Assembly (NCBI GenBank): GCA_977016875.1
Contig: CDRNST010000093.1
Span: 7,254,001 to 7,318,000 of the forward strand
Length of the DNA: 64,000 nucleotides
Source: Pavona decussata
Lineage: Eukaryota
Direction: 5' to 3'
The notes under the pieces are model-generated. The model was not told the DNA's origin. It did no database searches and saw nothing but the letters and a program-made list of their open reading frames with translations. Below, one piece after another: positions 16,796 through 36,891 of the stretch (position 1 is the stretch's first letter; the number at the start of each line of letters is the position of its first letter). A program made the position numbers and the translations under genes.

Positions 16796-18884
16796 ATGAA
16801 TTCCCTGCTACTGATCCTGTTTCTTGGAACTTCGTTCGTCTTGGCAGAGGTGGCATTCGCAAGTCCAGCCCTTGACGAGATCTTAAATGACGAAGAAAAT
16901 GAAATCATGGATGTGTTCGCTGACGAGGTAAACTTAGATCCTACAGTTCATTTGCTACGTATTCTCTAAAAGTTTCCAAAAACTAAGCGCGCCTTCCATT
17001 TGTCTGTAAATCGAATGCGTCATTTTGATGGGATGTTGCTGCAAAATCTTGAAAATAATCACTCAGAAAATAGTACGTGCTATTTTGAAGAAATTCAAAT
17101 TGATCCTTCAAATTGGTACATTCCGTTTACGACTTGACCGGTGTGGCCGGCTATCGCTAATTGCACCTAAACATTCCGATTACAGTTCTATAATATGAAA
17201 TGGGTATCACCGAGCTCGTTTGTAAGTTAGAACCACTTAAAGGTAAAAAATAGGGGTAACCTGTTATATCGAGAAAATGACTAAAAGTTGTTCACAAATA
17301 TTTAGGGGTGTTTTTGACACCATTGTTGTTTCATCAACTGATAAAGAATTGCTCTGTTGATCTGTCAAGGCATTAGTGATGTGAAGGTAAAGAAAAGCAT
17401 CGTCTTTGTACGGAAATGGTCTCGCTTTAAAAATAATCTCTCACAAAATCTGTTGCATTAACAATGTATAAGAAGCGTAAAACGTAGAATACCTTGACTT
17501 GAAATCAAATATCTTGTATGACCTTTTGTGTGATTTTATTTTATTATATGTATATACTTTTTGCTTGATCTATTTGTTTTTATACAATGAACTGCGTAAA
17601 ACTCGCGTTTTGATTGGTCTGAGGAGTGTGTGATTAGAGTATAGACGCACGATTGACGTCATCGAGTGGTGTGACCGGCGCACGTGATCAGAGTCTAGAG
17701 TCCAGCCAGAGTGACTGGGCAACAAAGTTTTGCAAACTGTTTTCAGTTTGGAGAGTAGCGGACAAACACAGGCAAATTTTCCCAGGAAAAGAAAACTGCC
17801 CAATAAAAAATTGGACAAAGACCGTTGAGAGTGACCTCAACCAGGATAAAAAAGCTAGAACTTTGTTGTGACGTGAAAAGGAAGCCAATTTTTGTCGAAA
17901 TATGTCGCCGATAGAAATCCGGTAATGGCGGGTAATCGATTACAAATCGCAATAAAGCGACTAACATGCTGTAATATTTTGGGGTCAGGATTTCCTTCTG
18001 GAATAAACGTTAGTTTTGAAAATATTTTTAGTGAAATTCTTTCGGATTATACTCTTTAGAAGATCACAGTTGCATGTGTGTTGTAGTCTAAAACTGAGTT
18101 TGCTGGAAAGATTTTGACTCAGCTCAGGCAACGCGATGCTCACTCACGAAATGTGTTAAAATGTCTTGGCCTATTGTATAAAACAAATAGATTCCATTTT
18201 GCCGTGGGTCTGTACTCTGATAACGCACAGAGGACGTCAAAACGTGGTGAGAACATCAGTCACGCTACTTGCCTGCGGCTCGTAGCGTACTTCTTTGTTC
18301 TCACCACGTTTTGACGTCATCTGTGCGTTATCAGAGTACAGACGCACTGCGAAATGGAATCTATTTATTTTAGTCTCGTACCTTTCTGTTTTTGGTGACG
18401 ATATTTGTTTTCTTTGTTTAGTCATTCGAATTAGTTGCATCTGTAATTTTGTAATTTGTTGCATTTACAATTGCTTTGTAAATTGTAAAATCCGTTAACT
18501 TGAAATAAAAAAAAAAGAAAAGAAAAAAAAGAAACCTATGTAACCAGTTTAAGCTTGCTTTGGTCAAATGTTTAAAGGGAAGTAGCGCGTCTACTCACCA
18601 AATCCCGCCAAGAATGTTCTACTGACAGGGTCATAAATTTTTCTTATCCATTTTAACAGAAAGATTGTGAAGAGGAAAAAAAGGAGTGTATGGAGAAGGA
18701 ACGTGATAAACGTGATGACGAGGAGGAGAATAAGAAATGCGGCAAAGTGGAAAAGGAGGAGTGTATGAAGAAGGAACGTGATAAACGTGATGACGAGGAG
18801 GGGAATAAGAAATGCGGCAAAGTGGAAAAGGAGGAGTGTATGGAGAAGGAACGTGATAAACGTCATGACAAAGAAGGGGATTAA
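16796..18884 (+). CDS. Array copy 3: repeat-expanded, frameshift-truncated precursor (118 aa); join(16796..16927,18660..18884)
   Basis: Exon 1 as in copy 2 (ASPA variant). Exon 2 KDCEEEKKECMEKERDKRDDEEENKKCGKVEKEECMKKERDKRDDEEGNKKCGKVEKEECMEKERDKRHDKEGD*. The ancestral CGECYTAC...C tail lies out of frame to 18975. Confidence 0.75.
17580..18366 (+). mobile_element. ~790-bp non-autonomous hairpin-ended DNA element in the intron of copy 3
   Basis: Absent from introns of copies 2 and 7 (empty site GATCTATTTGTT(C/T)ATTTTAGTC). Terminal ~190-bp palindrome at 18180-18366. Confidence 0.85.
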
Positions 18885-34714: not shown

Positions 34715-36891
34715 ATGAATTCTCTGCTACTAATCCTGTTTCTTGGAACTTCGCTCGTCTTGGCAGAGGTGGCATTTGCATATCCAGCCCTTGACGAGAT
34801 CTTAAATGACGAAGAAAATGAAATCATGGATGTGTTCGCTGACGAGGTAAACTTAGATCCTACGGTTCATTTGCTACGTATTCCAAAAACTAAGCGCGCC
34901 TTCCAGTTGTCAGAACTGGCCGGCCACAGCGGTCAGTCTGTAAATCGAATGCGTCATTTTGACGGGATGTTGCTGCAAAATCTTGAAAATAATCACTCAG
35001 AAAATAGTACGCGCTTATTGAAGAAATTCAAATTGATCCTTCAAATTGGTACATTCCGTTTACGACTTGACCGGTGTGGCCGGCCATCGCTAATTGCACC
35101 TAAACATTCCGATTACAGTTCTATAATATGAAATGGGTATCACCGAGCTTGTTTTAAGTTAGAGCCACTTAAAGGTAAAAAATAGGGGTAACCTGTTATA
35201 TCGAGAAAATGACTATAAGTTGTTCACAAATATTTAGGGGTGTTTTTGACACCATTGTTGTTTCATCAACTGATAAAGAATTGCTCTGTTGATCTGTCAA
35301 GGCATTAGTGATGTGAAGGTAAAGAAAAGCATCGTCTTTGTACGGAAATGGTCTCGCTTTAAAAATAATCTCTCACAAAATCTGTTGCATTAACAATGTA
35401 TAAGAAGCGTAAAACGTAGAATACTTTGACTTGAAATCAAATATTTTGTATGACCTTTTGTGTGATTTTATTTTATTATATGTATATACTTTTTGCTTGA
35501 TCTTTTTGTTTTTATACAATGAACTGTGTAAAACTCGCGTTTTGATTGGTCTAGAGGAGTGTGTGATTAGAGTATAGACGCACGATTGACGTCATCGAGT
35601 GGTGTGACCGGCGCACGTGATCAGAGTCTAGAGTCCAGCCAGAGTGACTGGTCAACAAAGTTTTGCAAACTGTTTTGGAGAGTAGCGGACAAACACAGGC
35701 AAATTTTCGCAGGAAAAGAAAACTGCCCAATAAAAAATTGGACAAAGACCGTTGAGAGTGACCTCAACCAGGATAAAAAAGCTAGAACTTTGTTGTGACG
35801 TGAGAAGGAAGCAAATATTTGTCGAAATATGTCGCCGATAGAAATCCGGTAATGGCGAGTAATCGATTACAAATCGCAATAAAGCGACTAACATGCTGTA
35901 ATATTTTGGGGTCAGGATTTCCTTCTGGAATAAAGGTTAGTTTTGAAAATATTGTTAGTGAAATTTTTTCGGATTATACTCTTTAGAAGATCACAATTGC
36001 ATGTGTGTTGTAGTCTAAAACTGTGTTTCCTGGAAAGATTTTGACTCAGCTCAGGCAACGCGATGCTCGCTCACGAAATGTGTTGAAATGTCTTGGTTAT
36101 TGTATAAAACAAATAGATTCCATTTTGCCGTGGGTCTGTACTCTGATAACGCACAGAGGACGTCAAAACGTGGTGAGAACATCAGTCACGCTACTCGCCT
36201 GCGGCTCGTAGCGCACTTCTTTGTTCTCACCACGTTTAGACGTCATCTGTGCGTTATCAGAGTACAGACGCACGGCAAAATGGAATCTATTTGTTAAATT
36301 TTAGTCTCGTACCTTTCTGTTTTTGGTGACGATATTTGTTTTCTTTGTTTAGTAATTCGAATTAGTTGCATCTGTAATTTTGTAATTTGTTGCATTTACA
36401 ATTGCTTTGTAAATTGTAAAATCCCTTAACTTGAAATAAAAAAAAAAAGAAAAGAAAAAAAAGAAACCTATGTAACCAGTTTAAGCTTGCTTTGGTCAAA
36501 TGTTTAAAGGGAAGTAGCGCGTCCACTCACCAAATCCCGCCAAGAATGTTCTACTGACAGGGTCATAAATTTTTCTTATCCATTTTAACAGAAAGATTGT
36601 GAAGAGGAAAAGGAGGAGTGTATGGAGAAGGGACGTGATAAACGTGATGACGAGGAGGAGAATAAGAAATGCGGCAAAGTGGAAAAGGAGGAGTGTATGG
36701 AGAAGGAACGTGATAAACGTGATGACGAGGAGGAGAATAAGAAATGCGGCAAAGTGGAAAAGGAGGAGTGTATGGAGAAGGAACGTGATAAACGTGATGA
36801 CAAGGAGGGGAATAAGAAATGCGGCAAAGTGGAAAAGGAGGAGTGTATGGAGAAGGAACGTGATAAACGTCATGACAAAGAAGGGGAATAA
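34715..36891 (+). CDS. Array copy 6: repeat-expanded (one extra unit), frameshift-truncated precursor (143 aa); join(34715..34846,36592..36891)
   Basis: Exon 2 has four RDKR sites and 8 Cys and ends ...RDKRHDKEGE*. Same +1 frameshift as copies 3 and 4. Confidence 0.75.
35512..36297 (+). mobile_element. Hairpin-ended DNA element in the intron of copy 6 (same insertion as copies 3 and 4)
   Basis: Same site and sequence as 24004..24789. Confidence 0.85.

Follow-up and report, generated by a model that had tools for sequence, protein, structure and literature searches.

A repeat expansion and a shared frameshift in three paralogues of a cysteine-rich peptide gene array of Pavona decussata

Precursors that carry several peptides as tandem repeats are known among cnidarian and other neuropeptide precursors, in insect apidaecin and in plant Ib-AMP, and R-x-K-R is the textbook furin consensus. 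Cysteine (Cys)-stabilised helical hairpins are likewise familiar, with twin C-x3-C motifs in plant alpha-hairpinins and twin C-x9-C motifs in CHCH domains. Among secreted peptides of corals, the antimicrobial damicornin, AmAMP1 and digitiferin carry ShK domains (PMC12496222). Here we analyse a stretch of 64,000 nucleotides (nt) from the 602-Mb Pavona decussata genome (contig CDRNST010000093.1; the whole stretch is called the window below), which holds eight paralogues of a small two-exon gene for a Cys-rich peptide. In copies 3, 4 and 6 a 75-bp segment of exon 2 is repeated in tandem, and a shared one-nucleotide gain cuts the reading frame short. An earlier note on this stretch had proposed that these copies are being converted into a neuropeptide-style polyprotein and had named an amplified pseudogene as the alternative. 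We find that the alternative fits better than the polyprotein, since the truncated frame changes at the rate of its flanks with a ratio of non-synonymous to synonymous rates (dN/dS) of about 1.2, and we somewhat favour the view that copies 3, 4 and 6 are neutrally copied, drifting truncated paralogues (functional pseudogenes).

The paralogues are spaced by about 6.4 kb and span window positions 2700–46700; all are on the + strand except copy 2, which lies on the − strand. Exon 1 lies downstream of a TATAAAAG box and comprises 44 residues followed by a phase-0 GT donor. As read from the sequence, its product starts with a hydrophobic leader (M-N-S-L-L-L-I-L-F-L-G...) and continues into an acidic segment, a predicted N-terminal signal peptide and pro-piece. 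Exon 2 begins after TTTTAACAG; its product in intact members is a domain of about 50 amino acids (aa) with six invariant Cys arranged as C-x6-C, 13–16 residues, C-x2-C-x3-C, 8–10 residues, C. The motif RDKR, which aligns with the turn of a predicted hairpin, is confined to the clade of copies 2 and 7.

Tandem Repeats Finder detected the 75-bp period 3.0 times at 18670–18894, 3.0 times at 25093–25317 and 4.0 times at 36602–36901. The window contains 12 occurrences of the 15-mer coding for E-R-D-K-R, where 0.17 are expected; copies 3, 4 and 6 account for three, three and four of them, and copies 2 and 7 for one apiece. Translated from the splice acceptor, the exon-2 open reading frames (ORFs) of copies 3, 4 and 6 are 74, 74 and 99 aa long, contain three, three and four RDKR sites at 25-aa spacing, and end at TAA codons at 18882, 25305 and 36889. 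These results confirm two claims of the earlier note, namely a 25-aa repeat of the Cys2–RDKR–Cys3 segment in three, three and four units and a shared one-nucleotide gain that creates the three stops. The features of the expanded copies are as follows.

16796..16927, + strand: copy 3, exon 1; 44 codons, TATA box at 16729–16736, GT donor at 16928
17579..18364, no strand assigned: high-copy transposable-element insertion in the intron, with a hairpin at 18179–18372; found in copies 3, 4 and 6
18660..18884, + strand: copy 3, coding part of exon 2; 74 aa, 6 Cys, 3 RDKR, TAA at 18882
18867..18885, + strand: copy 3, frameshift site; one-nucleotide gain, two G>A changes and a private A>T giving GAT TAA
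18885..18975, + strand: copy 3, discarded ancestral tail; +1 frame open, C-G-E-C-Y-T-A-C...C up to the old TGA
23194..23325, + strand: copy 4, exon 1; TATA box at 23134–23141
25083..25307, + strand: copy 4, coding part of exon 2; 74 aa, TAA at 25305
34715..34846, + strand: copy 6, exon 1; TATA box at 34648–34655
36592..36891, + strand: copy 6, coding part of exon 2; 99 aa, 8 Cys, 4 RDKR, TAA at 36889
36945..36956, + strand: copy 6, run of eight C in the relic tail; second frameshift, beyond the last ancestral Cys

The frameshift lies within a 19-nt site, GACAAAGAAGGGGA(T/A)TAAG, at 18867–18885, 25290–25308 and 36874–36892. Compared with the upstream units, the site has one extra A and two G>A changes, with GAC-AAA-GAA-GGG-GA(A/T)-TAA in the last unit and GAC-(G/A)AG-GAG-G(A/G)G-AAT-AAG in the others. 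The shift discards Cys4, Cys5 and Cys6 of the otherwise invariant six-Cys framework. The truncated copies retain Cys1, Cys2 and Cys3, followed by alternating further copies of Cys2 and Cys3 to a total of six or eight Cys, and the protein stops six codons past the last RDKR. Copies 3, 4 and 6 therefore fail the C-x6-C...C-x2-C-x3-C...C framework of intact members; the 93–97% identity of their exon 1 and flanks indicates that they belong to the family by descent and not by domain. In the discarded tail, copies 3 and 4 have a run of seven C and copy 6 has eight, which agrees with the further C noticed earlier. This run is unstable, with 7, 7, 8 and 19 C across copies (18938–18948, 36945–36956 and a copy in a second assembly, at about position 10360 of L001), and the version with 19 C adds 12 nt, which keeps the old reading frame.

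The signals expected of a gene, claimed to be intact, are all present in the three copies (TATA box, ATG, GT donor, AG acceptor and AATAAA, the last at 19047–19052 in copy 3). Two small reservations must be made: in copy 4, 7 bp are missing between the TATA box and the region of the transcription start, and the signal peptide of copy 3 carries a Leu>Phe change private to that copy. These three are the only expanded copies in the window's genome. The derivation of the expanded form from a single-domain six-Cys gene by repeat expansion and a shared frameshift is upheld by comparison with two intact members of the array.

42636..42800, + strand: copy 7, exon 2; intact single-unit six-Cys gene, one RDKR; no other unexpanded type in the window is closer
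9679..9846, − strand: copy 2, exon 2; second intact single-unit gene, with one RDKR

The layout of the truncated copies shares several features with the known multi-peptide precursors: in both, a signal peptide and an acidic pro-piece precede a series of near-identical units, every one of which closes with a basic site of the convertase type, and the repeats are the product of tandem duplication within one exon. Cleavage at RDKR is predicted to yield fragments with two Cys and a six-residue Cys-free end, just as had been deduced before. The truncated copies might therefore be working precursors, in which a furin-type convertase cuts after R-D-K-R and frees several acidic Cys-x7-Cys peptides of about 21–23 aa with one disulfide each. 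We consider this quite improbable. It is consistent with the furin-type R-x-K-R sites, with the N-terminal signal peptide read from the sequence and several peptide copies bounded by basic sites, and with a unit number that is still rising, from three to four in copy 6. However, unlike the known precursors, copies 3, 4 and 6 have no amidation signal, as no Gly stands ahead of RDKR. Their repeated unit is a fragment of a fold and strongly acidic; with a net charge near −5, the freed peptides would be atypical of neuropeptides and of antimicrobial peptides alike.

Read evidence came from contigs only, assembled from three probable RNA runs (X1–X3) and a DNA run (X11). Copies 3, 4 and 6 sit in a repetitive array, and the X11 contigs, although they cover the whole exon, lack the private letters of copy 3 (16835, 18680–18681). 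Both points would suit an assembly or sequencing artefact in the indel or the repeat number, an explanation to which we give almost no credence. A word-based protein search with the 99-aa copy-6 product matched a single genomic ORF (P0001) and nothing else, and this ORF led to a second assembly, the 335-kb contig ctg132296 of European Nucleotide Archive (ENA) record ERZ25073805, at about 62x. That contig carries the same array, with orthologues of copies 2, 7 and 8 and introns 98–99% identical to those of the window. It also contains two expanded copies, La and Lb, of three units each, with the identical gain and TAA. Since the same gain and stop recur in an independent assembly, the indel is not an assembly error, and because two substitutions accompany the gain it is no simple homopolymer miscount either. 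The X11 coverage of the whole exon counts further against an artefact. The number of copies differs between the two assemblies. Between copies 1 and 2 the window has reverse-transcriptase ORFs (RVT_1) of a retroelement at 5238–6874; a longer RVT_1 version of 586 aa stands at the matching place in the other contig.

With five copies at hand, we considered whether the frameshift might be bypassed, by a +1 ribosomal shift near GGG-GAA-TAA or by other recoding, giving a protein with 10 or 12 Cys. The +1-frame tail is open with all its Cys in four of the five copies, and the C-run expansion of one copy is in frame, as such recoding would predict. Yet the tree is only about 7% long, and over that length an open frame of 31 codons is expected by chance. 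Moreover, copy 6 has a further frameshift in the tail, and the site is unlike any established +1 shift signal. Recoding thus seems very improbable.

The five copies also bear out the claim that the allele was duplicated after the expansion and the frameshift. A transposon of about 790 bp in the intron is common to copies 3, 4 and 6 but absent from La, Lb and copies 2 and 7. Since La and Lb lack it, the expansion and the frameshift predate both the insertion and the duplications that yielded copies 3, 4 and 6. The flank phylogeny is ((c3,c4),c6), with Lb and copy 7 outside, and as there are three units in the outgroup copies, copy 6 gained its fourth later. The intron repeats at 17579–18372, 3958–4663 and 17002–17130 are of very high copy number, with a contig depth of about 1e5 in X11, and the hairpin at 18179–18372 is 86% matched.

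A 507-bp metagenome scaffold (L006, ENA ERZ23497850) holds an intact single-unit gene at 168–347, encoding the protein P0011; the tail of this gene hardly differs from the one that copies 3, 4 and 6 have discarded. The window's genome assembly lacks L006, but the allele occurs in other samples of the organism (runs X1 and X2 at 18544–19066), and it may be a surviving unexpanded sister allele. It is a mosaic: its flanks group with copies 1 and 5 and its tail with copies 3, 4 and 6, which points to exchange between array units. A scan of Joint Genome Institute (JGI) metagenome contigs for the frameshift site gave no match. A 21-mer coding for RDKR matched once among them, on an unrelated contig that is rich in G+C and not similar to the window; we dismissed this match as chance.

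From these comparisons we infer the following course of events. Slippage or unequal exchange in exon 2 would have tripled a 75-bp segment that codes for the end of a first helix, a turn with the furin-type R-D-K-R and the start of a second helix. One inserted A would have shifted the frame, with loss of Cys4, Cys5 and Cys6. The two steps may have come in either order, since every expanded copy that we found also has the frameshift. Unequal crossing-over between the ~6.4-kb units would then have copied the allele regardless of function, at least twice in the lineage of the window. This copying would have come after the transposon had entered the intron, and copy 6 would have gained its fourth unit later still. 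Because the stop lies in the last exon, a transcript would be expected to escape nonsense-mediated decay and to give a secreted, very acidic, E/K-rich chain of 74–99 aa.

We compared the five expanded copies (3, 4, 6, La and Lb) over 222 aligned nt, with one unit of copy 6 set aside. The truncated ORF has 16 variable sites, or 0.072 per site, close to the 0.074 of the last 300 nt of the intron and the 0.081–0.092 of the 3′ flanks; the relic tail has 0.045 (4 of 88 sites). Fourteen of the changes in the ORF are non-synonymous and two synonymous, for 189.7 non-synonymous and 32.3 synonymous sites (ratio 5.87). The resulting dN/dS of about 1.2 shows no departure from neutrality, and we judge the truncated product to be under no detectable selection. 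For comparison, copy 7 and its orthologue differ by four non-synonymous and three synonymous changes, a hint of more constraint that is not significant. Relative to their intact relatives, the truncated copies thus combine a disabling lesion, the loss of Cys4–6, with evolution at the neutral rate, from which we infer that they probably lack a function. Further lesions are confined to the extra C in the tail of copy 6 and the 7-bp promoter-region deletion of copy 4; there are none inside the remaining ORF. The neutral-like rate counts equally against release of peptides from a working precursor.

The surroundings suit drifting paralogues as well. Copy 8 (45878–46672) has GG in place of the GT donor in both assemblies (L004:10001–10796 in the other one), and in the window its Cys2 has also been lost (Cys>Ser) and its TATA box is one base short. 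It has the look of an older member in decay. In the other assembly, the copy-2 orthologue (L005, − strand, exon 2 from 2583) has a +4/−3 nt change after C-G-E-C-Y, a frameshift that removes Cys5 and Cys6 and represents an independent truncation in the same family. One unit there consists of exon 1 alone. Three further, more diverged copies lie on contig C85 of the window's genome (3572000–3591000). The intact one among them has a pro-piece of greater length and a hairpin domain of 47 aa that is cationic; in the other two, stops follow soon after the signal peptide. The array is thus a birth-and-death locus, and in such a locus duplication of a unit is uninformative about its usefulness. Like pseudogenes of other birth-and-death families, the expanded copies have a frameshift that removes half of the domain, a substitution rate equal to that of the flanks, duplication by the array unit and neighbours with other lesions. 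They differ from such pseudogenes in that none of the five has a second lesion in the remaining ORF, the promoter and splice signals are kept and the motif codons are unchanged.

Rapid change is not peculiar to the truncated copies. Between paralogues, exon 2 is 57–78% identical, compared with 85–97% for the adjoining intron, while exon 1, introns and flanks overall are 87–97% identical. Copies 5 and 1, for instance, share 96.7% identity over the last 150 nt of the intron and 68.6% in exon 2; for copies 7 and 5 the values are 86.7% and 56.5%. All six Cys are invariant despite this fast divergence of the mature-peptide exon. Fast change in exon 2 around invariant Cys resembles the pattern typical of diversifying selection on defence or venom peptides. 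As in venom and defence families of the conotoxin type, exon 1, introns and flanks are conserved, the mature exon is variable and the Cys framework does not vary. In contrast to those families, no toxin or antimicrobial activity is known for the array, and several members are acidic rather than cationic. Since the intact members are also fast-evolving, the neutral-rate test has low discriminating power.

We judge run X1 to be RNA because unique intron bins have a depth of 0–0.07 in it, against about 300 for sequence resembling the signal exon. This signal-exon depth belongs to other genes: the contigs carry the letters of other paralogues and run into unrelated sequence (loose ends at 16847 and 16924). 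X1 contigs with depths of 230–520 share the signal-peptide exon (16781–16942) but continue elsewhere, and one of them is spliced at the same donor into an exon that had no match in the window's genome. It appears that other genes, expressed at higher levels, use the same leader exon. Among the contig pieces listed, X1 has one for exon 2 of copy 3, 404 nt long and with a depth of 5.9, which skips 18732–18885 and includes 116 nt of the intron; its differences at 18924 and 18948 match L006. Depths in the repeat bins were 0.07–0.5 in X1 and 1.6–6 in X2 and X3, none of it assignable to the expanded copies. No contig specific to the expanded copies was among those listed for X1–X3, runs in which the intact array members are barely covered too and the animals may not carry the copies; as far as it goes, this argues against a working precursor. 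In protein collections, covered by word-based searches with the exons separately, the family is present as unspliced genomic ORFs only, and therefore their silence on expression is uninformative.

We also looked at the domain from which the repeated segment derives. A Pfam scan of six exon-2 products gave no significant match, and none to the ShK domain up to E 10. A profile built from seven intact exon-2 products and searched against 1.84 billion representatives found four proteins only. P0010 is an ORF of copy 5, and P0011 is the product of the intact single-unit gene on L006, with nearly the same tail as copies 3, 4 and 6. The other two, P0012 and P0013, come from marine metatranscriptome catalogues, are 316 and 334 aa long and matched with E values of 5e-8 and 3e-4. 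The profile matches four to five stretches in each of these two proteins, which have a signal peptide, an acidic pro-piece and C-x6-C...C-x6-C modules. Their modules are separated by Pro/Arg-rich linkers of the R-P-R-P-S-G type and by acidic spacers, and they are distant relatives both of the array domain and of a neighbouring repeat gene at about 57.1–58.2 kb of the window. As multi-module relatives that exist as expressed proteins, P0012 and P0013 lend some plausibility to a working precursor; unlike copies 3, 4 and 6, however, they repeat whole four-Cys modules, whereas the three copies repeat a segment smaller than a module and leave the module incomplete.

An AlphaFold2 model of the intact domain, made from an alignment, has a helix at residues 2–14, a turn and a helix at 18–32, with a predicted local distance difference test score (pLDDT) of 84–87 over residues 1–30. 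On the strength of this helix-turn-helix, the ancestral domain is predicted to be a helical hairpin stapled by Cys, with a twin C-x6-C (Cys1/Cys2 and Cys3/Cys5) and a Cys4/Cys6 pair. A Foldseek search of the model against PDB gave no match at E <= 0.001. The model shares with alpha-hairpinins and CHCH domains two antiparallel helices, each with a C-xn-C pair (C3-x6-C10 and C24-x6-C31). It differs from them in the x6 spacing and in an extra Cys pair (C27 and C40), with no sequence or Foldseek match; homology to them is neither shown nor expected. Like damicornin, AmAMP1 and digitiferin, the array products are secreted, Cys-rich and of coral origin, and they too have a signal peptide and a pro-region. 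But they lack a match to ShK and have a predicted two-helix hairpin, and since the known coral antimicrobial peptides are of the ShK type (PMC12496222), the array peptides represent a different family. The gene family is undescribed and its twin C-x6-C hairpin framework is unfamiliar; it belongs to a fast-evolving, lineage-restricted tandem array of secreted peptides.

Mapped onto the model, the 25-aa unit would comprise the end of helix 1, the turn with RDKR and the start of helix 2, and so would not be a whole fold module. Cys2 and Cys3 lie on opposite helices of the modelled intact hairpin, on either side of the RDKR turn, which, taken with the general logic of twin C-xn-C hairpins, suggests that they pair across it. 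If that pairing persists in the truncated products, fragments cut at RDKR would stay disulfide-linked instead of being freed. For the 99-aa truncated product AlphaFold2 gave a mean pLDDT of 46.8 and a predicted template modelling score (pTM) of 0.25, from a shallow alignment that makes this weak evidence. The proposed conversion into a neuropeptide-style polyprotein is thus not supported, given the neutral-like rate, the lack of a visible transcript and the lack of a confident fold, although the RDKR sites and Cys are invariant.

That invariance is one of several observations that weigh against neutral drift of the truncated copies. All 16 RDKR sites and every Cys are unchanged in the five copies, and none of the 16 variable sites falls within the 54 nt of Cys and RDKR codons (hypergeometric P = 0.0096, post hoc). 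The region of this test takes in 32 CpG dinucleotides. Exchange between units could also homogenise these codons and mimic constraint; the same double change is found in different units of copies 3 and 4. None of the five copies has lost the ORF, ATG, donor, acceptor or poly(A) signal, their remaining ORFs are free of further indels and stops, and Cys counts stay even, at six or eight. In addition, diversifying selection also gives dN/dS near or above 1, and the rate test cannot separate drift from adaptation. The RNA evidence is weak, with low depth for the intact array members too.

The conserved RDKR and Cys and the intact frames and gene signals would be expected of a working precursor. 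Together with the even Cys numbers, they would equally be expected if the whole secreted acidic Cys-containing repeat protein were functional, in matrix, in mucus or as a decoy, either uncut or held together by disulfides if cut. A stop in the last exon, which avoids nonsense-mediated decay, would also allow this. We regard a functional whole protein as unlikely: it faces the same neutral-like rate, lack of expression evidence and lack of a confident fold, and the search of 1.84 billion representatives returned no similar protein apart from close copies. Neutral copying of a drifting truncated paralogue remains the reading that we prefer.

If the truncated copies were a working precursor after all, this one locus would show the birth of a polyprotein, with the progenitor type (copies 2 and 7 and the L006 allele) beside the derived state within one array and population, and with a unit number that has not stopped changing. 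As it stands, the locus is a clean, dated case of a gained repeat, a truncated product and their neutral copying in a fast-turnover coral peptide array. Events of this kind are well known. The more notable biology is the family itself, with its hairpin framework and an exon that diverges far faster than the introns.

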